Below, piece after piece: positions 1 through 61,750 of a stretch of 64,000 nt of DNA. This DNA is from Hamiltosporidium tvaerminnensis FI-OER-3-3 (lineage: Eukaryota > Fungi > Microsporidia). A program made the translations under genes and the position numbers. The notes beneath the pieces are model-generated. The model made no database searches, was not told the DNA's origin, and worked only from the letters and a program-made list of their open reading frames with translations. Positions within the stretch are counted from its first letter, which is position 1. Each line of letters begins with the position of its first letter. Location: assembly GCA_022605425.2 (NCBI GenBank), contig JAKIMF020000001.1:1798001-1862000 (forward strand). The letters are read 5' to 3'.

Positions 1-180
1 AGCATTTATGATCAAAAATACTTCTACAATATATAAGGTAATATGGAAAGAACTATGGAAGTAATCTATCACTTGATTACAAGATGATCTCATTGTTATA
101 AAGTGAAGATGTGAGTCATAATATATTTCTAAGATGACTTGAACGAGTATGAAGCAGAGGATGACAGATAATGTTTTCAT
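1..180 (-). CDS. Partial copy (5' half) of the 118-aa signal-peptide/membrane protein family; runs off the window start
   Basis: Reverse complement from 180 reads MKTLSVILCFILVQVILEIYYDSHLHFITMRSSCNQVIDYFHSSFHITLYIVEVFLIINA, matching the six full copies. Confidence 0.5.
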   Translation of the reverse strand, partial: MKTLSVILCFILVQVILEIYYDSHLHFITMRSSCNQVIDYFHSSFHITLYIVEVFLIINA

Positions 181-2773
181 AAACAAACAATGTTATTCAT
201 TCTTTTATAATAAAAATTGTAAACAAGTTTCATGTTTCCTTATCAAATAAACAAATAAAAAAATCAGATTTTAGAAAAATTAAACAAAGAATATTTCGAT
301 TAGTTTATTAAGATAATATCTGAATTAATAGTAAATTGGTGTACAAAAAAAAGTAAAAAATATATTCTGATACGGTAAGTTAAACACAGAATATTATTTA
401 AAATGGTAAAAATATTAAAAATAAGAATTAAAATTTAAATAAAATATGTTTATAAAACAGGTTTGAAAACTTCATAAAAATATTTATTTCGTCTTTTGGA
501 TTGGAACAAATTGAATTATATTTTTATTAAGGATATCTATTAAAAATTAAAACAAGTAGTAAAAAATTCCACTCAATATTTTTTTATTGCATAGAGTTAT
601 CTATAGAAAATTGGTTCAAATTGCAATATTTTGGCTATTCATAATCTTGTTTCATTCTTTCATTATATATAACTCATTCGGTAAATTTTAATGGCATTGT
701 TTCAATTTCGATCAGCTTCTTTACATGTTTAAGTCTAATGATTTTTGCTTTTAATTTTTTAACCTCTTTTCTTAGAGGCGTGTATGTGCAATCGTATTTG
801 TAAAGAATAATGAACTGATTTGCTGACCGCTTGTTTCTGTGATCATATGAGAAGGTATTTTATAACATAATAAAATTAGAATAATAGATTAAAATTTTTT
901 GCAATACTTTTTATTAATTTATTTGAACGCTTTTAGATAAACCCTATTTTTCGTTCTTTCTTCTGGCGTGTATGCGGATAGATCGGAAGAATGACCCACT
1001 CTTGAAATGACCTACAAAGTTTTTCATATGCGAATTCCGGCTTATATGGATCTATTCTACGCAATTGCAGCGTTCGAGATCATTATTTGCCTACTATCTT
1101 TGCAAAGATGGTCGCAGATAAGGTTTTAAAAGGTTTAATTCTAATGAATTATACGTTGAAAAATGTAAATGCGGCTACTTTACATCTTATCTTTTTATTT
1201 CTCATATCATACTGTAACTTTCATGTTATTCTTGATAAGTTTTTTTTTACCGAAAGTCTTGTATCGGTATAAAGAACAGATAAATTAAAGTATCGGGGAA
1301 GAATGATAGGCGCTTCGCTTTTTTATTGTAAAACATGTGAATAATACCCAAAAAATATGTGAATATAGAGTTATGTTGAATCTAAACAAAGTCTTCTTTA
1401 TTTATAATTTTATCGATGAACTTATATGTTGTAATTTCGCCCGGTCTTCTATTTTGCATTTTTAAATTTAATTCATTTAAATCCATGTTGTTAGTGGTTA
1501 ATATAGCACGTGTACTGATCCACTGATGATTTTAAACTTTATCGTGATATCTCGAAGAATGTTTTGATTCATTGATCTTGAGTTGATGTCATCTTACAAA
1601 AGTTTTCTGGAAATGTAATTTATTGTATAAATCCGTAAAATATTACTTCGAATTCTCTATATCTATTATTTTTTTTCCGAAAAGTGCAGCAAATGTATCA
1701 TTTTGTTTTCTAACACGTAAGTTAGTTTTTTTAATTAATTTCTTTGCATTTCTCTTTAATATTGATGATTTTAGACATGTGTTTGGTTCATCGTTCGGTG
1801 TGAGACAAGGAATAACTGATAGAGTTTGATGAAAATCACTAGACGGTAAAATTAACGCTCTTAAGAAGGTCTGTAAATTCCCTCTCGGATTTTTTAGTGT
1901 AAGATAAAGTGCTTCCAGTTCCTTTTTGTGTGTCTCTTTGTAGTATTCTACTATCTAATTATAGGTTATTGAATTCCCTTATAAATATAAAATTATATTT
2001 TATTAAAACCTCAATGGTAGAAGAAAGGAAAACCTGAAGTGGAATAATAATTCAAATAAATCTTCGTTAATCAAAAAAAATCTTTATTTACACGGGTTAA
2101 CAAACCCTTTTATTCAAATGATAGAGCCTGCCTCTATCAAAGATACCTTTTATCCGGGTGACTCGAGAGATATTGTGACATCCTCATACATTAGTTTTTT
2201 AATCAGTTCGTATTTAGTGACTTTGCCTATTCCATAATTTTTAGTGATATTACATATTGTTCTCTCATTGGTTTGCAAATACAATTGTAACGTTAAAAAT
2301 TAATGTTTCGATGACCATCATCTAAAAATGTTGCCTGATTTTGGAAAAAATTCGATAAAAGAGCAAGAATGAATATAAAAAACAAACAGGACACCTTTAA
2401 ACTTATTATATTTAATAAAACACATTTAAGATATGACACGCTCTAATAACACGTTTTAACTTACTATACCATCTTTAACAACCTGCTAACCTAAATATTC
2501 ATTTAATACCATACTTTAACTGTAGTACTCTCTGAATTTTAACTCCTTAAATTCACCACACTGTTTTAACATCGTTTAATAAAAATCTCATAATAAAATC
2601 TTTTAGTTATAGGGTTTTTTGATCAATATAAATATCCTTGCAATCCATATAATAATTTTTCGATCAATATCATAGTTGTTGAAGTCAATATCATAATCCT
2701 TGCAATCAATATAATAATTATTTTTAAAAAATAAAAATTGAAAAAATAAAATACAAATAGTACTTGAGATTTA

Positions 2774-3943
2774 TTATTTAAGAATCACTTGCCCTATTTC
2801 AGCCTTTTGCAAATACTCTAAAATTTTGTGGTAAAAAGAACTACAATGTTCTCCCGTGATCTCATTAAATTTTTCACAAATTAATATTCACAACTGAGGC
2901 CCAGTACGAGCGCCACCTCGAATTACTTTATTTTTTCAGATTGAGATTAAATTCTCAATTGGATTAAGAAATGGAGAGTAAGGTGGAAGAAATTTTATTC
3001 GATCCGCAGCAATTTCCTCATCATCATCCAATCCACGATAGTGATGAATTCTCGCATTGTCTATTACAAATATAGGAGTCGAAATTCTTTGCTCTTGACA
3101 AATTTCATTAATCTCATTAATAGATAATTTGAAGTCCTCACCATTTACAGCCCTTTCATGAATATTATGGTATATCATAGCATATTTGTTCATTGCTGCG
3201 ACTCTGAAATATTTTTACTTCAGGCTGCAGCCACAAAAAATTGTGTAGATTCATCTCTCATATTAGGGCCTCTACTGGGGCGTATTACTACCACAACCCC
3301 AACTTCGTCTAAAAAGACAAAGTTTTTGTCATCGTTATTAACCTCCAATTCTCGAAAACTAGTTGCGTAATTTGTTCTGAGCTCGTTTTCAGTGGATACT
3401 TTCTACGCTCAGGCACTAATGTTATACGCTTTAGAGTGTAATGATACTCTCTTGGTGCGCGATCAATGTACTAGTTTAAACATCAACATTGAATGTACAT
3501 TTGATCCATTCTGCCTCCTCATACAGGGTTTTTGTACACTCCTAATCAACATAGGTTTGTAAGCTCTCTTTTATTTCCAAAGTTAACTTTGAACGCCTAT
3601 CACCACCATCTCTTTTCTCGACAAATACCAGGCCGGTTTTTAAATATCGTTTAACGATACTATTAACCGTCTGGTAATTTATTTGATACATCGAGGCAAT
3701 TGCAGACATAGAATGGCCTTCCAATGTCTTTTCAATTATGCATTCCCGATCATTATTAGAAACTTTTTGTTTCCTCAGAGCTGGAATGGTGGTTGTTGAG
3801 GGATTTTCATCATGTGATCCCGATGTTTCTACAAGACACTTCGAAACATTGTCATTTTCGCACTCTATACATTCCGGTGTTTCACCGACATGAAAATCAT
3901 ATTTGTTCTCGTTGGTATTTTTACCTGAAAAAGAATTTGACAT
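2774..3943 (-). pseudogene. Tc1-like DD34E transposase with stops and frameshifts
   Basis: HTH-like N-terminus (SMSAIASMYQINYQTVNSIVKRY), FLDEVG, FVIDNARIHH...FLPPYSPFLNPIEN with 34 residues between D and E. Confidence 0.9.
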
Positions 3944-4015
3944 GGGAGTTAATTTTATAATGACTAAATTATTTTTTACATTTTTATTTTTTAAAAATAA
4001 TTATTCTATGGATTG

Positions 4016-7000
4016 GAAATTAAATGGGTAGAAAGAAAAATGTTAGCAGCGAAATATCAAAAAATTCCAAAATAAAGGCTGCAAACGACGCTGATGAGAT
4101 GAAGAAGAGTGATAGTGAGGTACAAAAATGTAAGCTACACCCACCGGCGATTTCCCTACCTTCCTCCTCCTACACAACAATAACACCTCCACCACCAAGC
4201 CAAACATGCAGTAAAATGCAAAATAGTGGGCTTGACACCTTACCTTCGCCTAATGCACCAGTTCCCTCTTCGGTTGAAGTCTCTGCGTGCGAGCCATCGT
4301 ACGACATGACAAGCCCTTGTACTCTAGCTATTACGGAAGGTAACAGGCTAATGGCATTGCGGACGATATTCGATTCCGTAACAGCCGACCCGAAGGAATG
4401 GCCTCGAATTGTTTTTTTTGCAGTACAGACAAGGTTTGAAAGAATGCCAAGAAATGGCTGGACAGAGCTTCACAGGTACTATAATGAGAAATTCGGCTGC
4501 ACTGAAACTCTCGAAGTGTTAAAAAAATTGGCACAAAGTGAGATGGGAAAAGAAGTAAAATCAGAAGAGAATGGAGAGCGACGTAGAATCGCCACTTGTC
4601 TCGCTGATACATACACCTTGACCGACACCACGGAGTACATAAACCTGAGAGATAAATTCTTGAGTAAAATCAAATAAATCTCGGAGAACGAAATTGGAAA
4701 AGTGGTGGTCCGAACTAGAAAACATCCAAATGAATTGGTTGATAGTAAAGTTCTGGATCTCATTAATCGAGTAGTCGGTGAATATGCAGGAGCTCATGTA
4801 CCTGAGTCAATTACGGAAGCCGCGTATATCATGCAAGCTGCGCAGGTATGCTATGACGAGGCAACACGCAAAGAAAAGCCTAGATCCGCTTGGAAGGAAA
4901 ACATAGAAAGTAAAATTTCTAAGTTAGTACTTTCCAAAGATCTTCTCGAGAAGGCTCGTAAGCAGGAAAAGCTCTCCACCTCGGAAACGAAGAGCCTTAA
5001 GAAAATCATGCGAGAGTTTAATTTAAACTTGAGCAGTGTAACTGATCTTTCTGAGGCTTTAGTTAAGAATAATGAGTCTTTGAACGTTTATGAGAAAAAA
5101 ATTACGATGTATGAAAGTAGGAAGCAATTCCGAAAAGAGAATCGTATGTTTGAGCTTTTCAGAGGTCGATTTTATCGTGGGTTATCTGAGCGTGTGGAAT
5201 CCGAGCATGTGGTTAGTCGTGATGAAATTGTGAGTTTTTGGTCTACAATGTGGAACAAAAATGATGACACAGTCACGTATGATGATTATTTGATTCCATT
5301 TGTATCAGATAATCATCCGATTACGTTTCCTTCACTTGATGAATTTGTAAGTATCATTAATCGGCTTCCCAATTGAAAGCTGCTGGAATTGATTGTATTT
5401 ACAATTTTTTCATTCGGAAACTTACAACTCTTACAAATATATTTATGATATTGTGAAAGTTATATGTTTAGAAGGAACATTCAAGCTGATTGGTTTTACT
5501 GCGGGCTTACGTATTTGATACCGAAAGGAATTCCACAAAGAGGCTCTGACTACAGGCCAATCACTTGTATGTCCAACCTCTATAAGTTAACGAAAAAGTG
5601 TGTAACGAAAGTCGTTCAACTTGAAGTGGAAAGGCGAGGGTTGCTTGCAGAGAACCAGTTGGGAGCAGTTAGAGGTGTGCAGGGAGCGAAAGAGCAGGCT
5701 CTAATGAATATTGCCTTAAATAAAGAGTACGGAAACAATCTTAAGGCAACATGGATTGATGTTAAAAAAGCTTATGATTCAATAGATCATGCTTATTTAA
5801 CTCAATGCATTGAAAACCTTAATTTACCTGATTGGATCCTGAAATTTATTAAGGTAATTATATCAAAATGGAAAATTGATATATCAGTAGGGCCTGAAAA
5901 AATCATGAGCAAGAAGATTGATAGAGGAATTCTACAAGGAGATAGTCTGTCACCTTTGTTATTTGTGTTGTGTATGGATCCATTAAGCCGAAAGCTTAAT
6001 GAAAAATACACAAAAGTGACAGTACAAACAGATGCAGAATCCCATTCTACTAATCATCTCTTGTTTATTGATGATCTTAAGCTCCTTGCAAAAGACAGCT
6101 CCACATTGAGTGCTATGACAGGCGAGGCAAAGGAATTTTTAGAAGTGATTGGCTTAGAGATTAACAGAGAGAAGTCAGCCACAAATGATACGTGTTGTGA
6201 AGATACTGCTACTCTTCTAGAAGGTGTTAGTGTTTATAAATATTTAGGAATAATAGAAGATAGCAGAGGAATTCCAACACGTAGTTCATTTGAAGAAGTA
6301 CAAAGTAAACTTCTATCAAGAGTTTAAAGACTTTGTCACACTAGATTAAACGCAAAAAATTTATTTTCTGCAATTAATCAACATGCGATATCGTTAATCA
6401 ACTACCACATAGGAGTACTTCGACTTGAACCGGCTGACTTCTCTAAGTTAGATGATGCAGTGCGTGCGGTGTTGGTGAAGAATAAGATACATCTCCGCCC
6501 AGGATGTAAAGAGCGTTTATACCTTACTAGAGCAGAACTTGGAAGAGGCCTACATAGTGTTGAGTTGCGAAGCGAACATATGCTTCTACAACTCTTGGAT
6601 TGTCTGGAAAAAAGTAAAGAAATATCAACTAGACGAGCAGCAATCCTCAAGGTGGAGAATAATAATAAAACCCATCTTGCACTAATAAAAGGCTTCTTAA
6701 AAGTAAAGTACAGGTTGGTAGAAGAAGCCACTAAGAAAAGTTTAGAAGAAGCTCAACTTGCAAAACTATATAACGAAATAGAAAAACGAAAACTCCATTC
6801 TTGTTATATAATGCAAGAAAAAATGAGCTTGTGAGTGTTAGTGACTCTTCAAGATGGTTAAAGAGAGGAAATATTAGGCCACGAAATGAAGCTGTGTTCT
6901 GCTATATCCAGGATAGAAATGTATTCTGGGGAGCAGATGGTGTGTGTCCACATTGCGGGAAGTCTGGAAGAATTTAGATCATCTAGCAACTCGATGTAAA

Positions 7001-7818
7001 AATGCTAGGCCATACTAAATTAGACGGCATAATGAAGTGGTTAGATGCCTACACCTACTTCTTCAAAATAGATATAAGTTTAAGTTTTCAAAACGAATTA
7101 GGAGTCACTCAGTTCAAGAAATTCTTGATAATGAGTATGCAGAGATAAGAGTGGACACCAGAATAAAAACTGATGTTAAAATTCGGAATAACAGACCCGA
7201 CATATTTATTTTAGATAAGAAGAAGAATAAGATAACACTCATTGAAGTAGGAATCACTTCCCAAGATTCACTTCAAATAGTTGAAACTGAAAAACTTAGG
7301 AAGTATGACCTGCTAGCCAATAAGTTGGGTCTTATTTATAAGTGTAGTGTTGAGATAATCCCTTATGTGATGACCTGGGACGGTATTGTGACAAAATACC
7401 ATAAATCTCATCTTAAAAGACTAGAAATACCCATGAATGTAGAGGCATACATTCAGTCTATAGTACTTAAGAAAACAGTCGAAACAATTTCCTTTGATCG
7501 ACGAAGAGGACTTGAGTCAGGACTAAATGCCGAAGAGAGCTGGGAGAGAGCGTCAATGGGTGTTATTATGAGATCGGAGATGCATGAGGAACCAATACCC
7601 CCTTTAAAAGGAGCGAAAACAGAGGAAGATGGTGCAAAAAATTTTAAACCAAAATATAAAGCACCCTTTATTTTACAAGGAGGAACCGCTTTAGAGGAAC
7701 CGACCAATAACATAAATGAAGAGTCGGATTTGGAAGAAGAGACAAAAGTGGTTAAAGAGGTAGAAGAAAACATATAAAAATGTTAAAAATATTTTAACCC
7801 AGAATTTTATTAAATAAA
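4016..7818 (+). mobile_element. Full-length R4/Dong-like non-LTR retrotransposon (RT + CCHC + restriction-like endonuclease), young copy 1, 10-bp TSD
   Basis: TSD ctatggattg at 4006..4015 and 7819..7828; empty site present in Tc1 copy 2 (~16814..16823). Confidence 0.95.
4024..7777 (+). pseudogene. Single ~1250-aa retrotransposon polyprotein broken by stops and frameshifts
   Basis: RT motifs YRPITC, WIDVKKAYDSI, GILQGDSLSP, HLLFIDDLKL, YKYLGI; RLYL..ELGRGL; RHNEVV; RPDIFI...LIEVGI...EKLRKY. Confidence 0.93.
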
Positions 7819-7990
7819 CTATGGATTGCAAGGATTATGATATTGATTGCAACAATTATGATATTGATCGAAAATTTATTATATTGATTGCAATGATTAT
7901 GATATTGATCGAAAATTTATTATATTGATTGCAATGATTATGATATTGATCGAAAAATTATGATATTGATTGCAAGGATTATTATATTCA
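7819..7990. repeat. Tc1 subterminal minisatellite, ~20-21-bp units alternating atattgattgcaa / atattgatcgaaa (7 units)
   Basis: Directly visible tandem units; shorter inverted array at the other end of the element (~2620..2720). Confidence 0.9.
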
Positions 7991-8879
7991 TTGAAAAGCC
8001 TTATAATATACCTTGATATAAAAGAGGTATAAAAGAACATGCAAAAATGTGATGTAAATAAGCAATATCATTTCGTTGTTATCATATAAAATTACAAGAA
8101 CACCGATTTTTTTTCTCTTATCTGAGTTAGTCACAAAATAGTTATTTTCGCAAGAGATTATAAGGATCTCAATTGATTTCTTACGAATATAACATTTAAA
8201 TTCTCTTATATTCTTCGATCATCCTTCAATTTCTAAACAATAAATTCTAGCGTGGTCTCGTGCTTATATTTTTGGCTAAATAATTTAAAAATATTCTTAA
8301 CTTCAGGATTTGATTTTATTTTATACAATTTCATTTGCTTTTTCGCATCTTGTATTTGTTTCATACGTAAAGTGATTTTTTTGATCAATTTAACTATCCG
8401 AATTTTTATTCATTATCTAAATACCAATAAAATTGTTAAAATATTAAGAGAAATTAAATCCAATTTTTTAATTGGATATGGTCATTTTACCCAGGGCTTC
8501 GTAATTTCGTTTCAAGGAACCAAATATTGATAAATTATGTTTTTACTAAAAAAATTAGAAAACGTTTATATATCATACAATCTAGATTCTATTATTTGAA
8601 TTTAAGTTTTAAACAGAAACATATGCACATCGTAATCTTATTTTACAAATCACATAGAAAAACTCAAAAAAAATACCCAAATAAAAAGCTTTTATTATCA
8701 AAACTTATAAGGCGTAAATTTGTAAAGTATTTTAGAAAAAAAATATAAAATATAAACGATTTTTTTGAACTTTTTATTTATTCTATTTATTTCTCATCAA
8801 TCCAACAATCCAATCGTCTCTTAATAGAACATAATTTGCTAACAGGGACAGTTTTTGCGGGGTTGTCCAGCCCCAAAAC

Positions 8880-9236
8880 TTATATATTAAGCTCGGATTC
8901 TTCATTATGTTCTAATATGATTTTTAAGCAAGTAAATTTTTCTGGATATTTAAACATTTCAATATATACTTCGATGATTAAAACCCAATACTGCTCAAAT
9001 GCATTCATTGGTATTTTCTTTGTATCTATAAATAAGTATTGTAATATTGAAACCAAAGCATTTATAATCAAAATTACTTCTACAATATATAAGGTAATAT
9101 GGAAGGAACTATGGAAGTAATATATCACTTGATTACAAGATGATCTCATTGTTATAAAGGGAAGATGTGAGTCATAATATATTTCTAAGATGACTTGAGC
9201 GAGTATGAAGAAGAGGATGACAGATAATGTTTTCAT
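8880..9236 (-). CDS. 118-aa putative secreted/membrane protein, multicopy family (ATG start used instead of the TTG in the track)
   Basis: MKTLSVILFFILAQ signal-peptide-like start, internal hydrophobic stretch; ORF intact in all six full copies. Confidence 0.55.
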   Translation of the reverse strand: MKTLSVILFFILAQVILEIYYDSHLPFITMRSSCNQVIYYFHSSFHITLYIVEVILIINALVSILQYLFIDTKKIPMNAFEQYWVLIIEVYIEMFKYPEKFTCLKIILEHNEESELNI

Positions 9237-10744
9237 AAACAAACAATGTTATTCATTCTTTTATAATAAAAATTGTAAACAAGTTTCATGTTTCCTTATC
9301 AAATAAACAAATCAAAAATCAGATTTTAGAAAAATTAAACAAAGAATATTTTGATTAGTTTATTTAAATAATATCTGAATTGATTATTTAAGAGTTTAAT
9401 ATTACTTTGAGTAATTCTAATTAAAATAATTAAATCAAGAAATAGCTTTTCTTAACTAACAGTTTAAACTAGAATTATGGTAGCTTATATTTTTCGATAA
9501 ATATTTTAGTTTGAACAACTAATTTCAGCGCTAAAAATGTTTACTTAAATGGTAAAAAATCTAGAGTATAACAGACTTGAAATAAAAAAATTTGTGCTGT
9601 AAAAAAATATAAATTTTCATTTAATCTTTTTGAATTCGAAGCATAATTTATTTTTTTAAGAAATTAAAAAGAACTGATACCAAATTTTACTAAATGCTTA
9701 AAGGAATTCAAAATATACTAAGAAGCCGAATGAAAATGAATTGCTTTAAGAAATAGAAAATGCGATATATTAAGTTGCTTGAATTAATTGTTTAAAGGAT
9801 AATTTATCGATTTAATCCTTAATTTATTAGATAAATCATATTAGATTAGGAATTGATATTTCACTTGAAATTTAGAACACTATTTAAAAAAGAAATGATA
9901 AATATTCGAGTGGGTTTTTTTCTAAAGTTCACTTGTGAATTTTGTCGAAGAACATGATGAGGCGAAAACCCGATTTTAAATATACAAAGATATATCTCTT
10001 GATTAAATAGACTCTATAACATGCGATTCACGCTAAACAAGATATTAGGACGTCAATATACGAAAATAAATTTGATTGCTACAGTGGCGGAAAGAAAACA
10101 TCATTCTTTTTAAACTAAGGTAAAGAGTAAAAAAGAGAAATATGTCTTCAAATGATATTTTTTGTAACATACAATGCTTCGTTTGAAAAAGTTACGATAA
10201 AAAATATTTTGAAGAATATAAACCCACCAAAGAAAATCTAAATTGGATTTGTTTTATTTAATAGCGGGTTTCAATTAAAAATTGTGAAAAGTTTACATAA
10301 ATTTAACGCCAGTCTTTCGTTCATAAAATAAATCAAAATACGTTGATTATGCTTGAAATTTTGTATAATTTGAAGGTTATCAGTTATTTTATCTTTATGA
10401 AGATATTCAATATAGACTTAGTCAACAAATAAAATAAATTTGGTGCGGATTTTAAGCGCATGTGTATATGCCTAGAACCGAATTTTTAAAAAATCTTGCC
10501 CTGTATTAAGTATATAAGTTAAAATATACATTTTAAGCCTTAATTTATTTTTAAATTTTGAAATGAATATTGCTCAAAAGAGCGGCCATTATAAAACCTG
10601 AATATAAAAATCGAAATAGATATGCACGCAAAAAATAGTTTTCAACATTAATCATGAAATAGAAACGAAATATGACTCGACGAAGTATGTTTATACATTT
10701 AATAGCTCGCTTTTTCTCTACGGATGGAACAAATTCCAACAATT

Positions 10745-14329: not shown

Positions 14330-15100
14330 TGATTTTCTTTTAATATATAGATAAATCGAAGAACTTAAGATTCTAAAAAGGATAAAATATTTTTTGCATT
14401 TAATTTACACTTATTTTATATCTAAACTTTTAATTAATCTTCGCTTTAACTTATTCCAATAAGCAAAAGTCTAATATCGGGCACACGTTGTCAATTATTT
14501 ATCAATATTTTTAAATATATACATTTTCTAGAAGATATTGGTTTTACACAAAATGTATTATTTGTTATTAGTATTTAAATTTTCGTTTTGAAAAAAATCA
14601 TCAAATATGCAGTTATTGAAAATCTATTTCTAAATGAATTCAAGTTCATCAAATTAAAGGTGGCTTTGTAATGAGATATTCATATAGGCATGGAATATCA
14701 TTTTCATATATTCTGTCTAGTTTTTACCTCGAGAGCTACATAAGAAACACTTACAAAAAAAGCTAACAGCCTTAAAAATTCACTATCCATTCTTTTTTAA
14801 ATAACGTTCTAAATTTCAATGGAAATATTAATTCCTAATCTAATATGATTTATCTAATAAATTAAGGATTAAATCGATAAATTATCCTTTAAGCAATTAA
14901 TTCAAGCAGCTTAATATATCGCATTTTCTATTTCTTAAAGCAATTCATTTTCATTCGGCCTCTTAGTATATTTTGAATTCCCTTAAGCATTTAGTAAAAT
15001 TTGATTATCAGTTCTTTTTAATTTCTTAAAAAAATAAAATATGCTTCGAATTCAAAAAGATAAAATGAAAATTTTCCTTTTTTATACCACAAATTTTTTT
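14330..15100 (+). pseudogene. Highly degraded LRR-like gene remnant spanning the spacer/arm junction
   Basis: Short translated pieces such as FKQLNISHF and NSLKHLVKFD resemble LxxLxL repeats; many stops. Confidence 0.3.
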
Positions 15101-15448
15101 ATTTCAAGTCTGTTATACTCTAGATTTTTTACCATTTAAGTAAACATTTTTAGCGCTGAAATTAGTTGTTCAAACTAAAATATTTATCGAAAAATATAAG
15201 CTACCATAATTCTAGTTTAAACTGTTAGTTAAGAAAAGCTATTTCTTGATTTAATTATTTTAATTAGAATTACTCAAAGTAATATTAAACTCTTAAATAA
15301 TCAATTCAGATATTATTTAAATAAACTAATCAAAATATTCTTTGTTTAATTTTTCTAAAATCTGATTTTTGTATTTGTTTATTTGATAAGAAAACATGAA
15401 ACTTGTTTACAATTTTTATTATAAAAGAATGAATTCCATTGTTTGTTT

Positions 15449-15805
15449 ATGAAAACATTATCTGTCATCCTCTTCTTCATACTCGCTCAAGCCATCTTAG
15501 AAATATATTATGACTCACATCTTCACTTTATAACAATGAGATCATCTTGTAATCAAGTGATATATTACTTCCATAGTTCCTTCCATATTACCTTATATAT
15601 TGTAGAAGTATTTTTGGTTAAAAATGCTTTGGTTTCAATATTACAATACTTCTTTATAGATACAAAGAAAATACCAATGAATGCATTTGAGCAGTATTGG
15701 GTTTTAATCATAGAAGTATATATTGAAATGTTTAAATATCCAGAAAAATTTACTTGCTTAAAAATCATATTAGAACATAATGAAGAATCCGAGCTTAATA
15801 TATAA
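15449..15805 (+). CDS. 118-aa putative secreted/membrane protein, multicopy family
   Basis: MKTLSVILFFILAQA-ILE: K n-region, hydrophobic core, A-x-A cleavage motif. Confidence 0.55.
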   Translation: MKTLSVILFFILAQAILEIYYDSHLHFITMRSSCNQVIYYFHSSFHITLYIVEVFLVKNALVSILQYFFIDTKKIPMNAFEQYWVLIIEVYIEMFKYPEKFTCLKIILEHNEESELNI

Positions 15806-16679
15806 GTTTTGGGGCTGGACAACCCCGCAAAAACTGTCCCTGTTAGCAAATTATGTTCTATTAAGAGACGATTGGATTGTTGGATTGATGAGAAATAAAT
15901 AGAATAAATAAAAAGTTCAAAAAAATCGTTTATATTTTATATTTTTTTTCTAAAATACTTTACAAATTTACGCCTTATAAGTTTTGATAATAAAAGCTTT
16001 TTATTTTGGTATTGTTTTTGAGTTTTTCTATGTGATTTGTAAAATAAGATTACGATGTGCATATGTTTCTATTTAAAACTTAAATTCAAATAATAGAATC
16101 TAGATTGTATGATATATAAACGTTTTCTAATTTTTTTAGTAAAAACATAATTTATCAATATTTGGTTCCTTGAAACGAAATTACGAAGCCCTGGGTAAAA
16201 TGACCATATCCAATTAAAAAATTGGATTTAATTTCTCTTAATATTTTAACAATTTTATTGGTATTTAGACAATGAATAAAAATTCGGATAGTTAATTGGA
16301 TCAAAAAAATCACTTTGTATGAAACAAATACAAGTAACGAAAAAGCAAATGAAATTGTATAAAACAAAATCAAATTCTGAAGTTAAGAATATTTTTAAAT
16401 TATTTAGCCAAAAATATAAGCACGAGACCACGCTAGAATTTATTGTTTAGAAATTGAAGGATGATCGAAGAATATAAGAGAATTTAAATGTTATATTCGT
16501 AAGAAATCAATTGAGATCCTTATAATCTCTTGCGAAAATAACTATTTTGTGACTAACTCAGATAAGAGAAAAAAAATCGGTGTTCTTGTAATTTTATATG
16601 ATAACAACGAAATGATATTGCTTATTTACATCACATTTTTGCATGTTCTTTTATACCTCTTTTATATCAAGGTATATTA

Positions 16680-18218
16680 TAAGGCTTTTCAATGAATATA
16701 ATAATCCTTGCAATCAATATCATAATTTTTCGATCAATATCATAATCATTGCAATCAATATAATAAATTTTCGATCAATATCATAATTGTTGCAATCAAT
16801 ATCATAATCCTTGCAATCCATAGAATAATTATTTTTAAAAAATAAAAATGTAAAAAATAATTTAGTCATTATAAAATTAACTCCCATGTCAAATTCTTTT
16901 TCAGGTAAAAATACCAACGAGAACAAATATGATTTTCATGTCGGTGAAACACCGGAATGTATAGAGTGCGAAAATGACAATGTTTCGAAGTGTCTTGTAG
17001 AAACATCGGGATCACATGATGAAAATCCCTCAACAACCACCATTCCAGCTCTGAGGAAACAAAAAGTTTCTAATAATGATCGGGAATGCATAATTAAAAA
17101 GACATTGGAAGGCCATTCTATGTCTGCAATTGCCTCGATGTATCAAATAAATTACCAGACGGTTAATAGTATCGTTAAACGATATTTAAAAACCGGCCTG
17201 GTATTTGTCGAGAAAAGAGATGGTGGTGATAGGCGTTCAAAGTTAACTTTGGAAATAAAAGAGAGCTTACAAACCTATGTTGATTAGGAGTGTACAAAAA
17301 CCCTGTATGAGGAGGCAGAATGGATCAAATGTACATTCAATGTTGATGTTTAAACTAGTACATTGATCGCGCACCAAGAGAGTATCATTACACTCTAAAG
17401 CGTATAACATTAGTGCCTGAGCGTAGAAAGTATCCACTGAAAACGAGCTCAGAACAAATTACGCAACTAGTTTTCGAGAATTGGAGGTTAATAACGATGA
17501 CAAAAACTTTGTCTTTTTAGACGAAGTTGGGGTTGTGGTAGTAATACCCCCAGTAGAGGCCCTAATATGAGAGATGAATCTACACAATTTTTTGTGGCTG
17601 CAGCCTGAAGTAAAAATATTTCAGAGTCGCAGCAATGAACAAATATGCTATGATATACCATAATATTCATGAAAGGGCTGTAAATGGTGAGGACTTCAAA
17701 TTATCTATTAATGAGATTAATGAAATTTGTCAAGAGCAAAGAATTTCGACTCCTATATTTGTAATAGACAATGCGAGAATTCATCACTATCGTGGATTGG
17801 ATGATGATGAGGAAATTGCTGCGGATCGAATAAAATTTCTTCCACCTTACTCTCCATTTCTTAATCCAATTGAGAATTTAATCTCAATCTGAAAAAATAA
17901 AGTAATTCGAGGTGGCGCTCGTACTGGGCCTCAGTTGTGAATATTAATTTGTGAAAAATTTAATGAGATCACGGGAGAACATTGTAGTTCTTTTTACCAC
18001 AAAATTTTAGAGTATTTGCAAAAGGCTGAAATAGGGCAAGTGATTCTTAAATAATAAATCTCAAGTACTATTTGTATTTTATTTTTTCAATTTTTATTTT
18101 TTGAAAATAATTATTATATTGATTGCAAGGATTATGATATTGACTTCAACAACTATGATATTGATCGAAAAATTATTATATGGATTGCAAGGATATTTAT
18201 ATTGATCAAAAAACCCTA
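16680..18218 (+). mobile_element. Tc1/IS630-family DD34E transposon, copy 2 (uninterrupted, ~1.54 kb)
   Basis: TIRs tata-aggcttttcaatgaatata / tatattgatcaaaaaaccc-tata with internal repeat arrays and an inverted AT tract; TA flanks. Confidence 0.92.
16886..18054 (+). pseudogene. Tc1-like DD34E transposase pseudogene
   Basis: ORF pieces 16886..17287 and 17635..17892; D-34-E catalytic region; ctcccATG start context. Confidence 0.9.
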
Positions 18219-20497
18219 TAACTAAAAGATTTTATTATGAGATTTTTATTAAACGATGTTAAAACAGTGTGGTGAATTTAAGGAGTTAAAATTCAGAGAG
18301 TACTACAGTTAAAGTATGGTATTAAATGAATATTTAGGTTAGCAGGTTGTTAAAGATAGTATAGTAAGTTAAAAATTGTTATTAGAGCGTGTCATATCTT
18401 AAATGTGTTTTATTAAATATAACAGGTTTAAAGGTGTCCTATTTGTTTTTTATATTCATTCTTGCTCTTTTTATCGAATTTTTTATAAAATCGGGCAACA
18501 TTTTTAGATGATGGTCATCGAAACATTCATTTTTAACGTTACAATTGTATTTGCAAACCAATGAGAGAACAATGTGGAATATCACTTATATTCCGGAATG
18601 GGCAAAGTCACTAAATACGAATTGATTAATAAAACTAATGTATGAGGATGTCGTAAAATCTTTCGAGGAACCCAGATAAAAGGTATCTTTGATACCGGCA
18701 GGTTCTATCATTTGAATAAAAGGGTTTGTTAACCCGTGTAACTAAAGATTTTTTTGATCAACAAAAGATTTATTTAAATTATTATTCCACTTCAGGTTTA
18801 CCTTTCTTCCACCATTGAGGTTTTAATAAAATATAATTTTATATTTATAATGAATTCAATAACCTATAATTAATAGTAGAATACTACAAAGAGACACATA
18901 AAAAAGGACTGGAAGCCCTTCATCGTACACTAAAAAATTTGAGAGCGAATTTACAGGCTTTCTTGAGAGTGCTAATTTTACCGTCTAGTGATTTTTATCA
19001 AACTCTATCAGTTAGTCTTTGTTTCACACTGAACGATGAACCAAACGCATGTCTAAAATCATCAATATTAAAGAGAAATGCAAAGAAATTAATTAAAAAA
19101 ACTAACCTACGTGTTAGAAAACAAAATGATACATTCACTGCACTTTTTGAAAAAAAATAATAGATATAGAGAATTCAAAGTAATACGTTTACGTATTTAC
19201 ACAATAAATTGCATTTCCAGAAAACTATTATAAGATGACATCAGCTAAAGATCAATGAATCAAAACATTCTTCGAGATATCACGATAAAGTTTAAAATCA
19301 TCCGTGGATCAGTACACGTGCTATATTAACCACTAACAACAAACATTTAAATGAATTAAATTTAAAAATGCAAATTAGAAGACCGGGCGAAATTACAACA
19401 TATAAGTTTATCGATAAAATTATAAATAAAGAAGACTTTGTTTAGATTCTACATAACTCTTGATTCACTGATTTTTTGGGTATTATTCACATGTTTTACA
19501 ATACAAAAGCGAAGCGCCTATCATTCTTCTCCGATAATTTAATTTATTTGTTCTTTATACCGATAAAAGACTTTCGGTAAAAAAAACTTATCAAGAATAG
19601 CATGAAAGTTACAGTATGATCTAAGAAATAAAAAGATAAGATGTAAAGTAGCCGAATTTACATTTTTCAACATATATTTCATTAGAATTAAACCTTTTAA
19701 AACCTTATCTGCGACTCATCTTAATAAAGATAGTAGGCAAATAATGATGTCGAACGCTGCAATTGCGTAGAATAGATCCATATAACCCGGAATTCGCATA
19801 TGAAAAACTTTGTAGGTCATTTCAAGAGTGGGTATATCTTCCGATCTATCCGCATACACGCCAGAAGAAAGAACGAAAAATAGTGTTTAACTGAAAGAGC
19901 GTCCAAATAAATTAATAAAAAGTATTAAAAAAATAAATTTTAATCTATTATGCTAATTTTATCATATTTAAAATTAGTTTCTTACAAGATCACAGAAACA
20001 AACGGTCAGCAAACCAGTTCATTATTCTTTACAAATACAATTGCACATACACGCCTCTAAGAAAAGAGGTTAAAAAATTAAAAGAAAAAATCATTAGATT
20101 TAAACATGTAAAGAAGCTGATCGAAATTGAAACAATGACATTAAAATTTACCGAATGAGTTATATATAAAGAAAGAATGAAATAAAATTAGAATAGCCAA
20201 AACAAGCAATTTAAACCAATTTCTTTAGATACCTTTATGTAATAAAAAAATATTAGATGGAATTTTTTACTACTTGTTTTAATTTTGAATAGATATCCTT
20301 AAAAAATATAATTAAATTTGTTCCAATCCAAAAGACGAACTAAATATTTTTGATAAGTTTTCAAACTTGTTTTATTAATATATTTTATTTTAATTATACA
20401 TCTATTTTTAATATTTTTTTCATTTAAAGTGATATTTTATGTTCAACCTACTGTATCAGACCATATTTTTAACTTTTTTTGTACACCAATTTATTAT

Positions 20498-21134
20498 TAA
20501 TTCAGATATTATTTCAAATAAACCAATCAAAATATTCTTTGTTAAATTTTTCTAAAATCTGATTTTTGATTTGTTTATTTGATAAGGAAACATGAAACTT
20601 GTTTACAATTTTTATTATAAAAGAATGAATTCAATTGTTTGTTTATGAAAACATTATCTGTCATCCTCTTCTTCATACTCGTTCAAGCCATCTTAGAAAT
20701 ATATTATGACTCACATCTTTACTTTATAACAATGAGATCATCTTGTAATCAGGTGATATATTACTTCCATAGTTCCTTCCATATTACATTATATATTGTA
20801 GAAGTATTTTTGATTATAAATGCTTTGGTTTCAATATTACAATACTTCTTTATAGATACAAAGAAAATACCAATCCATGCATTTGAGTGGTATTGGGTTT
20901 TAATCATCGAAGTATATATTGAAATGTTTAAATATCCAGAAAAATATCTTTATTATAAAACTATTTTAGAACATAATGAAGAATCTGAGCTTAATATATA
21001 AGTGTTGGGGCTGGACAACCCCGCAAAAAATGTCCCTGTTAGCAAATAAAGTTCTATGAAAGAGACGATTGGATTGTTGGATTTATGAGAAATACATAGA
21101 ATAAATAAAAAGTTCAAAAAAATCGTTTATATTT
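20498..21134 (+). repeat. ~640-bp dispersed module carrying the 118-aa ORF (7 copies in the window)
   Basis: Homology begins at aattcagatattattt and ends at aaaatcgtttatattt, with different flanks among copies. Confidence 0.85.
20645..21001 (+). CDS. 118-aa putative secreted/membrane protein, multicopy family
   Basis: Intact ORF, variant LVQA/IHA/KYLYYKTI. Confidence 0.55.
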   Translation: MKTLSVILFFILVQAILEIYYDSHLYFITMRSSCNQVIYYFHSSFHITLYIVEVFLIINALVSILQYFFIDTKKIPIHAFEWYWVLIIEVYIEMFKYPEKYLYYKTILEHNEESELNI

Positions 21135-57948: not shown

Positions 57949-60900
57949 AAAATGGGTAGAAAGAAAAATGTTAGCAGCGAAATATCGAAAAATACCAAAA
58001 TAAAGGCTGCAAACGACGCTGATGAGGTGAATAAGAGTGATACCGAAGTACAAAAATGTAAGCTACACCCACCGGCGATTTCCCTACCTTCCTCCTCCTA
58101 CACAACAATAACACCTCCACCACCAAGCCAAACATGCAGTAAAATGCAAAATAGTGGGCTTGACACCTTACCTTCGCCTAATGCACCAGTTCCCTCTTCG
58201 GTTGAAGTCTCTGCGTGCGAGCCATCGTACGACATGACAAGCCCCTGTACTCTAGCTATTCCGGAAGGTAACAGGCTAATGGCATTGCGGACGATATTCG
58301 ATTCCGTAACAGCCGACCTGAAGGAATGGCCTCGAATTGTTTTTTTTGCAGTACAGACAAGGTTTGAAAGAATGCCAAGAAATGGCTGGACAGTGCTTCA
58401 CTGGTACTATAATGAGAAATTCGGCTGCACTTAAACTCTCGAAGTGTTAAAAAAAATTGGCACAAAGTGAGATGGGAAAGGAAGATAAATCAGAAGAGAA
58501 TGGAGAGCGACGTAGAATCGCCACTTGTCTCGCTGATACATGCACCTTGACCGACACCACGAAGTACATAAACCTGAGAGATAAATTCTTGAGTAAAATC
58601 AAAGAAATCTCGATGAAGGAAATTGGAAAAGTGGTGGTCCGAACTAGAAAACATCCAAATGAATTAGTTGATAGTAAAGTTCTGGATCTCATTAATCGAG
58701 TAGTCGGTGAATATGCAGGAGCTCATGTACCTGAGTCAATTACGGAAGCCGCGTATGTCATGCAAGCTGCGCAGATATGCTATGACGAGGCAACACGTAA
58801 AGAAAAGCCTAGATCCGCTTGGAAGGAAAACATAGAAAGTAAAATTTCTAAGCTAGTACTTTCCAAAGATCTTCTCGAGAAAGCTCGTAAGCAGGAAAAG
58901 CTCTCCACTTCGGAAACGAAGAGCCTTAAGAAAATCATGCGAAAGTTTAATTTAAACTTGAGCAGTGTAACTGATCTTTCTGAGGCTTTAGTTAAGAAGA
59001 ATGAGTCTTTGAATGTGTACGAGAAAAAAATTACGATGCATGAAAGATGGAAGCAATTCCGAAAAGAGAATCGTATGTTTGAGCTTTTCCGAGGTCGATT
59101 TTATCGTGAGTTATCTGAGCGTGTGGAATCCGAGCATGTGGTTAGTCGTGATGAAATTGTGAGTTTTTGGTCTACAATGTGGAACAAAAATGATGACACA
59201 GTCACGTATGATGATTATTTGATTCCATTTGTATCAGATAATCATCCGACCACGTTTCCTTCACTTGATGAATTTGTAAATATCATTAATTGGCTTCCCA
59301 ATTGGAAAGCTGCTGGAATTGATGGTATTTACAATTTTTTCATTAAGAAACTTACAACTTCACAAATATATTTATGATATTGTGAAAGTTATATGTTTAG
59401 AAGGAACAACTCAAGCTGATTGGTTTTACTGCAGGCTTACGTATTTGATACCGAAAGGAATTCCACGAAGAGAATCTGACTACAGGCCAATCACTTGTAT
59501 GTCCAACCTCTATAAGTGCACGACAAAGTGTGTGACGAAAGTCGTTCAAATTGAAGTGGAAAGGCGAGGGTTGCTTGTAGAGAACCAATTAGGGGCGGTA
59601 AGAGGTGTGCAGAAAGCGAAAGAGCAGGCTCTACTGAATATTGCTTTAAATAAAGAGTATGGAAATAATCTTAAGGCAACATGGATTGATGTTAAAAAAG
59701 CTTATGATTCAATAGATCATGCTTATTTAACTCAATGCATTGAAAACCTTAATTTACCTGATTGGATCCTGAAATTTATTAAGGTAATTATATCAAAATG
59801 GAAAATTGATATATCAGTAGGGCCTGAAAAAATCATGAGCAAGAAGATTGATAGAGGGATTCTGCAGGAGATAGTTTGCCACCATTGTTGTTTGTGTTGT
59901 GTATGGATCCATTAAGCCGAAAGCTTAATGAAAAATACAGAAGGTGACAGTACAAACAGATGCAGAATCCCATTCTACTAATCATCTCTTGTTTATTGAT
60001 GATCTTAAGATCCTTGCAAAAGACAGCTCCACATTGAGTGCTATGACAGGCGAGGCGAAGGAATTTTTAGAGGTGATTGGCTTAGAGATTAACAAAGAGA
60101 AGTCAGCCACAAATGATACGTATTGTGAAAATACTGCTACTCTTCTAGAAGGTGTTATTGTTTACAAATATTTAGAAATAATAGAAGATAGCAGAGGAAT
60201 CCCAACACGTAGCTCATTTGAAGAAGTACAGAGCAAACTCATATCAAGAGTTGAAAGACTTTGTCACACTAGATTAAATGCAAAAAATTTATTTTCTGCA
60301 ATCAATCAACATGCGATATCGTTAATCAACTATCACATAGGAGTACTTCGACTTGAACCGGCTGAATTCTCTAAGTTAGATGATGCAGTGCGTGCGGTGT
60401 TGGTGAAGAATAAGATACATCTCCGCCCAGGATGTAAAGAGCGTCTATACCTTCCTAGAACAGAACTTGGAAGAGGCCTACATAGTGCTGAGTTGCGAAG
60501 CGAACATATGCTTCTGCAACTCTTGGATTGTCTGGAAAAAAGTAAAGAAATATCAACTAGACGAGCAGCAATCCTCAAGGTGGAGAATAATAATAAAACC
60601 CATCTTGCACTAATAAAAAGCTTCTTAAAAGTAAAGTACAGGTTGGTAGAAGAAGTCACTAAGAAAAGTTTAGAAGAAGCTCAACTTGCAAAACTATATA
60701 ACGAAATAGAAAAACGAAAACACCATTCAAAGTTATATAATGCAAGGAAAAATGAGCTTGTGAGTGTTATTGACTCTTAAAGATGGCTAAAGAAAGGAAA
60801 TATTTGGCCACGCAATGAAGCTGTGTTCTGCTATATCCAGGATAGAAATGTATTCTGGGGAGCAGATGGTGTGTGTCAACATTGCGGGAAGTCTGGTAAA

Positions 60901-61750
60901 ACTGTGGATCATCTAGCAACTAGATGTGAAAAAATGCTAGGCCATGATTACACTAGACGGCATAATGAAGTGGTTAGATGCCTACACCTTCTTCTTCTAA
61001 ATAGATATAAGTTTAAGTCTTCAAAACGAATAAGGAGCCACTCAGTTCAAGAAATTCTTGATAATGAGTATGCAGAGATAAGAGTGGACACCAGAATAAA
61101 AACTGATGTTAAAATTCGGAATAACAGACCGGACATATTTATTTTAGATAAGAAGAAGAATAAGATAACACTTATTGAAGTAGGAATCACTTCCCAAGAT
61201 TCACTTCAAATAGTTGAAACTGAAAAACTTAGGAAGTATGACCTGCTAGCCAATGAGTTAGGTCTTATTTATAAGTGTAATGTTGAGATAATTCCTTATG
61301 TGATAACATGGGACGGTATTGTGACAAAATACCATAAATCTCATCTTAAAAGACTAGAAATACCCATGAATGTAGAAGCATACATTCAGTCTATAGTACT
61401 TAAAAAGACAGTCGAAACTATTTCCTTTGATCGACGAAGAGGACTTGAGTCAGGACTAAATGCCGAAGAGAGCTGGGAGAGAGCGTCAATGGGTGTTATT
61501 ATGAGAGCAGAGATGCATGAGGAACCAATACCCCCTTTAAAAGAAGCGAAAACAGAGGAAGATGGTGCAAAAAATTTTAAAACAAAATATAAAGCACCCT
61601 TTATTTTACAAGGAGGAACCACTTTAGAGGAACCGACTAATAACATAAATGAAGAGTCGGATTTGGAAGAAGAGACAAAAGTGGTTAAAGAGGTAGAAGA
61701 AAACGTATAAAAATGTTAAAATATTTTAACCCAGAATTTTATTAAATAAA
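57949..61750 (+). mobile_element. Full-length R4/Dong-like non-LTR retrotransposon, young copy 2, 16-17-bp TSD
   Basis: TSD ttgagcatttattttt at 57933..57948 and 61751..61766; empty site at ~30563..30578. Confidence 0.95.
57952..61710 (+). pseudogene. R4-like polyprotein (RT, CCHC, RLE) broken by stops and frameshifts
   Basis: CQHCGKSGKTVDHLATRC zinc knuckle, RHNEVV, RPD...IE..K nuclease motif, HLLFIDDLK. Confidence 0.93.

Follow-up and report, generated by a model that had tools for sequence, protein, structure and literature searches.

Introduction

How do two different retroelements come to interrupt copies of one DNA transposon at almost the same nucleotide, and is the shared position a target that their integration machinery prefers? 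The question is raised by a stretch of 64,000 nucleotides of Hamiltosporidium tvaerminnensis DNA (contig JAKIMF020000001.1, positions 1,798,001 to 1,862,000), here called the window, in which one copy of a Tc1/mariner element is interrupted by a LINE, another by a short non-coding retroposon, and a third by neither. An earlier note on this DNA had proposed that a single endonuclease made both insertions and that the Tc1 site is a preferred target. Both proposals were followed up within the window and across the 21.64-Mb, 17-contig H. tvaerminnensis assembly, a gene-dense genome with 3,573 genes and 39.6% repeats (PMC10542269).

Two Insertions and an Empty Paralogue

The first insertion lies in Tc1/mariner copy 1, which occupies 2608..8005 on the minus strand from terminus to terminus, as judged from its located termini and its homology to copy 2. 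It is interrupted at 4016..7818 by a LINE of 3803 bp, a putatively R4-like non-LTR retrotransposon of the RLE type (RLE, restriction-like endonuclease) that runs on the plus strand and thus antisense to its host, and that is bracketed by 10-bp target-site duplications of CTATGGATTG at 4006..4015 on the left and 7819..7828 on the right (both plus strand). The second lies in copy 3 (43261..45591, plus strand, delimited by its termini and by homology to the other copies), where a non-coding retroposon of 736 nt, at 43445..44180 on the minus strand and also antisense to Tc1, is flanked by 12-bp duplications of CTTGCAATCCAT at 43433..43444 and 44181..44192 (plus strand). Copy 2 (16678..18220, plus strand), whose coding frame is broken, is uninterrupted, and the corresponding position in its left end repeat, 16809..16823 on the plus strand, is an empty version of the site that we call hot spot A. 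The 10-bp and 12-bp duplications and the empty site in copy 2 had all been described in the earlier note and are confirmed. Since the elements differ, the duplications differ and one paralogue is empty, the two retroelements did arrive independently, as had been supposed.

The nicks can be placed on the assumption of target-primed reverse transcription, with the first nick taken as the 5′ edge of the duplication on the priming strand. Projected onto copy 2, the first-strand nicks fall at 16823/16824 for the LINE and at 16821/16822 for the short element, 2 nt apart, and the second-strand nicks are 4 nt apart. Both inserts have the same orientation and occupy the inner edge of the left end repeat in paralogous Tc1 copies; in copy 2 the ATG at 16886 follows 62 nt downstream of the site. 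The claim of nicks about 2 nt apart, with one orientation relative to Tc1, is thereby borne out.

The Host Transposon

Membership in the Tc1/mariner group is shown by an HTH_28 domain (3e-8) and a DDE_3 domain (4e-12) found with Pfam, at 16886-17287 (HTH) and 17635-17892 (DDE_3) in copy 2, as well as by terminal inverted repeats and a TA target duplication. The termini read TA, TAGGGTTTTTCGATC ... GATCGAAAAACCCTA, TA (that is, TA-TAGGG...CCCTA-TA) in many copies whose flanking sequences are unrelated. At either end, an array of units of about 31 bp is followed inward by a zone of 60-110 bp that is nearly pure A/T. In the left end repeat of copy 2 this inner zone extends over 16824..16885 (plus strand, 11% GC), between the array and the ATG, and it is the region that draws the insertions. 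The equivalent of the hot spot A motif in the right end repeat of the same copy, at 18106..18130 on the plus strand, is empty here and occupied in six other genomic copies. Reading frames are broken in the window Tc1 copies that were surveyed.

At least 8 kb of flanking sequence is common to the three window copies and to four more on the same contig, and all of them are segmental duplicates of one locus. The three "Tc1 copies" of the earlier note are thus paralogues that do not represent separate transpositions, and the empty copy 2 is a true pre-insertion allele. The duplications are large, both inverted and direct, and 90-98% identical, relating window positions 1-9894 to 14790-20824 and to 41355-50378 and carrying the Tc1 copies with them; seven Tc1 paralogues were located within C12:1.80-1.94 Mb.

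Elsewhere in the genome, at C1:1492.2-1494.0k (L113/L114), a Tc1 copy is inserted at a TA inside an old copy of the short retroposon, so Tc1 was still mobile after the spread of the latter had begun, and each of the two families has hit the other.

The LINE and Its Endonuclease

The LINE at 4016-7818 is full length but frame-broken; 8 nt precede its ATG, and its last letters are TTATTAAATAAA. A second window copy lies at about 57952 to 61750. Pfam places an RVT_1 domain at 5464-6327 of the former (E 2.7e-28), and the best PDB sequence matches of the reverse transcriptase (RT) are LINE-1 ORF2p and R2 proteins. C-terminal to the RT are the motifs C-x2-C-x8-H-x4-C, RHN and PD-x14-E...K, invariant in an alignment of 20 sequences. 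The part that carries the CCHC motif and the restriction-like endonuclease, delimited in the second copy at 60823..61710 (plus strand) by motifs, alignment and a structure model, found no match in sequence and profile searches of the PDB. Its AlphaFold model reaches a pLDDT of 84.5 when 19 relatives are added, as opposed to 33 from the single sequence. R2 proteins take all of the top seven places among the Foldseek matches of this model (E 6e-8 to 4e-5, TMq 0.59-0.65), and other PD-(D/E)xK nucleases come next. At the level of the predicted fold it is thus confirmed that the LINE carries an R2-like restriction-like endonuclease.

Upstream of the RT, no Exo_endo_phos or other credible Pfam domain was found in the ORF pieces, nor did Pfam detect a zinc-finger or Myb domain in the N-terminal pieces. 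Read by eye, a W-x20-W spacing in these pieces has a possibly Myb-like appearance.

Both window copies are frame-broken; nine of 30 genomic copies are open across all 618 codons available, which suggests that the LINE is probably active. A first look at the genome gave about 1089 candidates for the family at 97-99% identity, a figure to be read as a rough copy number only. In the public databases, NCBI entries for H. tvaerminnensis include proteins that match those of the LINE at 95-99% identity. Relatives with 58-66% identity are deposited under bacterial metagenome bins (Candidatus Riesia, Paraclostridium and Bacteroidales), most likely because those bins are contaminated by eukaryotic DNA. 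The endonuclease region also occurs inside public Hamiltosporidium gene models named as Dcp1-like, Rho-GAP, Rpn7 and CorA-like proteins, which are probably chimeric annotations made across a LINE insertion.

Two genomic loci deserve separate mention. A full-length LINE at C6:326.7-330.6k (L009/L129) lies within a tandem array whose unit of about 15 nt, similar to TAGGGATTATAAAT, resembles telomere repeats. At C3:1.024 Mb and 1.040 Mb (L007/L014), two LINE copies have a common 3′ flank and differing 5′ flanks, a pattern that indicates rearrangement, or a duplication ending inside the element.

A Probable Non-Coding Partner

The retroposon in copy 3 belongs to a family of elements of about 730 nt that start, on the sense strand, with G(G)TGGAGGGAGG and end with TTTTAAATAAAG(TT). 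Its longest ORF is at most 77 aa, and it is non-coding. It is short, it has a high copy number and it is flanked by LINE-like duplications, as would be expected of a SINE; the label is used here in a functional sense only, with no Pol III head derived from tRNA, 7SL or 5S found. A search of Rfam at E up to 1 returned no family for it, whether ribozyme or a tRNA, 7SL or 5S head. The first-look genome candidates number about 1443, again a rough copy number only, and the best 40 of them are 97-99% identical.

What the LINE and the SINE have in common at their 3′ ends is only the last 9-10 nt, with a terminal TTAAATAAA (T-TAAATAAA). The lengths of their target-site duplications overlap, being 10-20 bp and mostly 12-15 for the SINE, and 11-20 bp and mostly 12-16 for the LINE. 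It is most likely that the LINE machinery mobilises the SINE in trans. With regard to the claim that the same endonuclease made both window insertions, the same kind of machinery is supported, whereas we infer that the same protein served the SINE.

In several SINE copies (C11:387.7k, C7:805k and C15:971k; L071, L075 and L082) the first 20 nt or so, the GTGG...CCAC hairpin, are repeated in tandem once or twice more on the upstream side. The arrangement suggests template switching or re-initiation at the 5′ end of the RNA during insertion. Separately, four of the 39 sampled SINEs (L068, L079, L083 and L091) have a LINE 3′ end no more than about 30 nt upstream of them, as though a LINE tail together with the duplicated target re-creates a good target.

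A Hot Spot in the Genome-Wide Record

The survey comprised 40 Tc1 copies with 80 ends, 30 of the copies being fully covered. The A/T inner zones of the 40 copies hold 17 LINE or SINE inserts, 11 at left ends and six at right ends. Among the 30 fully covered copies there is no insert in the 1.19-kb interior and none in the arrays or outer array units; all 12 inserts fall in the inner zones, which make up 11% of the length. The inserts in the zone depart from a uniform density at P = 2e-16, the inner zones differ from the rest of Tc1 at P = 3e-12, and clustering inside the zone is significant at P = 5e-9. Hot spot A accounts for eight of the 17 surveyed inserts, in a single 3-nt window and a single orientation relative to the motif. 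A second position on the opposite strand, hot spot B, accounts for four, with a duplication of TATAAAAAAATTAA or one a few nucleotides shorter. Exact-pattern scans of the whole genome, which also supplied the denominators of empty sites, added three further events at A and none at B, so that at least 11 occupied copies of A stand against about 62 empty ones (15% occupancy), and four occupied copies of B against eight empty ones (33%).

A pattern of this kind could in principle arise by survivorship, with insertion occurring everywhere and inserts persisting only in dispensable DNA such as dead transposons. The genome is gene-dense, as described above, and transposable elements do cluster around Tc1 copies, as this explanation would have it. 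However, the whole of Tc1 is dispensable and yet every one of the 12 inserts in the fully covered copies chose the inner-zone 11%, and selection cannot give the nucleotide precision with which nearly half of the surveyed inserts entered one 3-nt window in one orientation. We regard survivorship as a highly improbable sole cause.

The events at hot spot A are varied. The main LINE family accounts for four of them (window copy 1, C6:201k, C13:1222k and C2:897k). A second LINE family, whose 5′ and 3′ ends are not those of the main one, supplied the insert at C3:1204k, and a divergent, 5′-truncated LINE that at C6:206.7k. The remaining five are SINEs (window copy 3, C16:374k, C16:820k, C13:1315k and C11:284k). 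The SINE occurs at this site both full length and truncated, the copy at C16:374k being 5′-truncated and having a long A-rich tail. Duplications at A measure 9-12 bp, the nine first-strand nicks that could be mapped run from position 4/5 to position 11/12 and so span 8 nt, and the extra nucleotides at the junctions vary from event to event. By Tc1 end, five are on the left and six on the right. Since the elements, truncation, duplication boundaries and junction nucleotides all differ, these events are independent.

The same facts bear on the possibility that all the inserts descend from a single event, copied through Tc1 transposition, segmental duplication or gene conversion. That the three window copies and the four others on their contig are segmental duplicates would make such spreading conceivable. 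Against it, the inserts differ in type, subfamily, point of truncation, duplication boundaries, junction nucleotides and the end occupied, and the empty paralogue at 16809-16823 places the window events after the duplication; the chance that non-independence accounts for the record is extremely small.

At hot spot B, a LINE (C4:277k) and a SINE (C13:145k, L039) have an identical 14-bp duplication, and the same nick was used by a LINE subfamily 81% identical to the main one and by a right-end SINE. In one Tc1 subfamily (e.g., L121 at C4:281.3k, and L040) the B site lies in an 11-nt A-rich piece between direct repeats of about 15 bp, an arrangement that looks like the scar of a LINE tail inserted in extremely 5′-truncated form, which then travelled with Tc1 as it transposed.

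How much of the total traffic goes to this site was estimated from "random" samples, which consisted of the best-scoring copies of each family: one of 29 LINE 3′ ends and one of 39 SINEs were in hot spot A, where 0.0006 copies were expected (P = 2e-7). The other 66 of the 68 sampled copies, or about 97%, are in A/T-rich DNA of unrelated sequence (28 of 29 LINE 3′ junctions and 38 of 39 SINEs). We are therefore dealing with a hot spot and not with site-specificity, about 3% of the sampled LINE and SINE copies being at A. The earlier suggestion that this Tc1 site is a preferred target is upheld by at least 11 independent insertions, by nine nicks within 8 nt and by two sampled copies where next to none was expected, and the genome-wide count of LINE and SINE junctions against the Tc1 family finds the site enriched and excludes chance. 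The site-specificity known from many RLE elements, which the same note had brought to bear, does not extend to this one, with such a large majority of sampled copies in diverse AT-rich DNA.

What Marks the Site

Insertions away from Tc1 give an independent view of the preferred sequence. SINE duplications elsewhere tend to begin T(T/A)T and finish A(A/T)A, and LINE duplications elsewhere mostly come after a run of T and open with (A)AT plus G, C or A. On the strand nicked first the consensus is approximately S-N-A-T^A-W-A, running on into A/T-only sequence, and hot spot A conforms to it (...CAAT(A)^TAATAATTATTTTT...). Hot spot B, which lacks G/C near the nick, shows that this motif does not hold everywhere. 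When 32 unrelated SINE sites were turned into a position-weight matrix, the best scores anywhere in Tc1, 12-13.7, fell in its inner zones; the leave-one-out median of true sites is 2.0. For hot spot A the score is only 8.3, a value equalled or exceeded at about 1000 places in the 64-kb window, so the matrix explains the zone and not the roughly 3% share of A. Some further determinant would be needed beyond the measured sequence preference.

Three candidate determinants of the site were considered and rejected. The unit atGgattg, carrying a G at one position, had been described as a single variant at the inner edge of the array. In fact it recurs in the other end repeat, at 2636-2650 and 18178-18192, and most other occupied copies carry T there (attgattg), which makes the variant irrelevant. 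Homology between the RNA and the target was set aside because the duplications resemble the RNA 3′ ends by only 1-2 nt. Position in a promoter fares no better: the earlier note had pointed to the location upstream of the transposase ATG, and the motif in the other end repeat is used equally often (six of 11 events).

The A/T tract is a stronger candidate. A 21-mer around the A nick is matched by 154 array units in 30 loci, of which 111 have no A/T-only tract upstream, and these 111 hold no insert. A long A/T tract beside the nick would thus be needed, and it is the combination of tract and motif that would be favoured. The same units bear on the idea of an evolved safe-haven specificity, in which a DNA-binding module of the LINE is tuned to the Tc1 end, as in Tx1L/Tx1D or R2/28S rDNA, and the dispersed copies are off-target. 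The convergence of the main, the second and the divergent 5′-truncated LINE and of the SINE on the same bases, together with the occupancies at A and B, would sit well with such tuning, as would the frequent site-specificity of RLE elements (PMC4640811). On the other side, the unused units with 21 nt in common argue that the Tc1 word alone is insufficient, just two of 68 sampled copies are at the site, and a Pfam search of the N-terminal ORF pieces gave neither a zinc finger nor a Myb domain. Taken together, this makes a dedicated safe haven quite improbable.

The explanation that we favour, and consider likely, is that the inner edge of the Tc1 end repeats is a true hot spot for one RLE retrotransposition machinery with an intrinsic preference for a nick motif beside a long A/T-only tract. 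The machinery would belong to a non-LTR retrotransposon that is abundant and probably still active and that carries an R2-like restriction-like endonuclease at its C terminus; the same spot would be used by the relatives of this LINE in the genome and by the non-coding element of about 730 nt that it most likely mobilises in trans. Insertion would proceed by target-primed reverse transcription: the endonuclease would nick the Tc1-sense strand just inside the last array unit (...CAATC[C/A]AT^A^[G/T]^AATAATT...), the 3′-OH would prime cDNA synthesis on the 3′ end of the RNA, both RNAs ending in TTAAATAAA, and the other strand would be cut 9-12 nt away, giving rise to the duplication. What would favour the site is the nick motif (on the insert-sense strand, T-run ^ (A)AT + G/C) joined to an A/T-only, A-tract-rich segment of 60-110 bp.

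The principal competitor to a preference residing in bare sequence is recruitment, in which the complex is drawn to the boundary of a bound array by a factor sitting on the Tc1 end (transposase or a host factor), or by a nucleosome-free promoter or transcription. The hot spot does lie exactly at the boundary between the A/T zone and an array whose direct repeats resemble transposase-binding repeats, the weak matrix does fall short of the size of the preference, and the LINE is almost devoid of a 5′ UTR. However, the right end, which is upstream of no gene, is used as often at A as the left (six events versus five), which makes promoter recruitment in particular unlikely, and a steady supply of transposase is doubtful given the broken frames of the window copies. 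In addition, the SINEs found close to LINE 3′ tails have no relation to Tc1 and speak for DNA-intrinsic re-use of good sites. Overall, we judge recruitment to be decidedly unlikely as the main cause, but an array-bound protein might supply the specificity that the sequence preference lacks.

The geometry of the inner zone allows a further reading. A TnAn palindrome separates hot spots A and B, each of which lies 13-15 nt from it; the two are on opposite strands, and their inserts face outward. It is conceivable, though unlikely, that the complex reads a structural feature of the Tc1 end, namely an approximately two-fold symmetric palindrome of T-tract and A-tract flanked by TA steps, that the LINE has adapted to Tc1 as a semi-dedicated safe harbour, and that insertions knock out the promoter region of Tc1. 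Were this so, one transposon family would be policing another in a minimal eukaryotic genome.

Comparison with Known Systems

Target choice by RLE elements is known in detail mainly for the strictly site-specific R2, and the rules for dispersed elements are vague. Site-specific RLE elements include R2 and R4 in 28S rDNA and Dong in TAA repeats. Utopia, in U2 snRNA genes, is another (PMC4640811). The Hamiltosporidium LINE resembles these four in the order of its parts, RT and then CCHC plus a PD-(D/E)xK endonuclease whose modelled fold matches R2 proteins, and in having repeated sequences among its targets. Unlike them, it is not confined to one target, and Pfam found no N-terminal zinc finger or Myb domain in it. 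Its duplications of about 10-16 bp also differ from those of R2, which makes very small duplications or deletions.

Tx1L of Xenopus, which has an AP-type endonuclease and is essentially site-specific, inserts into the DNA transposon Tx1D. The likeness is that a non-LTR element lands repeatedly at one position in a multicopy DNA transposon; the differences are that the endonuclease here is of the RLE type and that about 3% of the copies are at the Tc1 site.

A third comparison is with the EhLINEs, which we take to belong to the R4 clade. EhLINE1 and EhSINE1 of Entamoeba histolytica are an RLE-type LINE and a SINE that insert at common positions, with hot spots that depend on DNA structure (Mandal et al. 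2006, PMC1635306), and the biochemical model for them calls for a rigid T-rich tract at -10 to -35 and an AATGC-like nick motif about 10 bp downstream (PMC1635306). Like that pair, the elements described here are dispersed in an A/T-rich genome, a LINE and a SINE have exact insertion points in common (hot spots A and B), and the endonuclease is restriction-enzyme-like. The T-rich tract with its nick motif has a counterpart in the T-run after which most LINE duplications here open with (A)AT plus G, C or A, and in the A/T-only tract beside the hot spot. Unlike EhSINE1, which is about 550 nt long, the microsporidian SINE is 730 nt and unrelated in sequence, and the duplications are about 10-16 bp. 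A further difference from EhLINE1 is that the present hot spot lies in a multicopy DNA transposon, which makes it countable over some 75 replicates.

A very abundant, apparently active LINE with a 730-nt non-coding partner is not mentioned in the microsporidian transposon surveys that were searched, and the two families may make up a large part of what the published assembly lists as a 25% "unclassified" repeat fraction. The principle itself is not new, the Entamoeba pair having already shown common sites and structure-dependent hot spots. However, about 75 near-identical A targets and about 12 B targets with varying occupancy amount to a natural replicated assay of target choice, in which the genome itself directly gives the nick positions with their scatter of +/-3 nt, the rule for orientation and the requirement for an A/T tract. 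In Hamiltosporidium, a parasite of water fleas, the precision of a cutting enzyme that the LINE and the SINE would share is read out in this way. The microsporidian RLE LINE/SINE hot spot is thus a fresh example of known behaviour, and its main value lies in serving as a natural assay of how such elements choose their targets.
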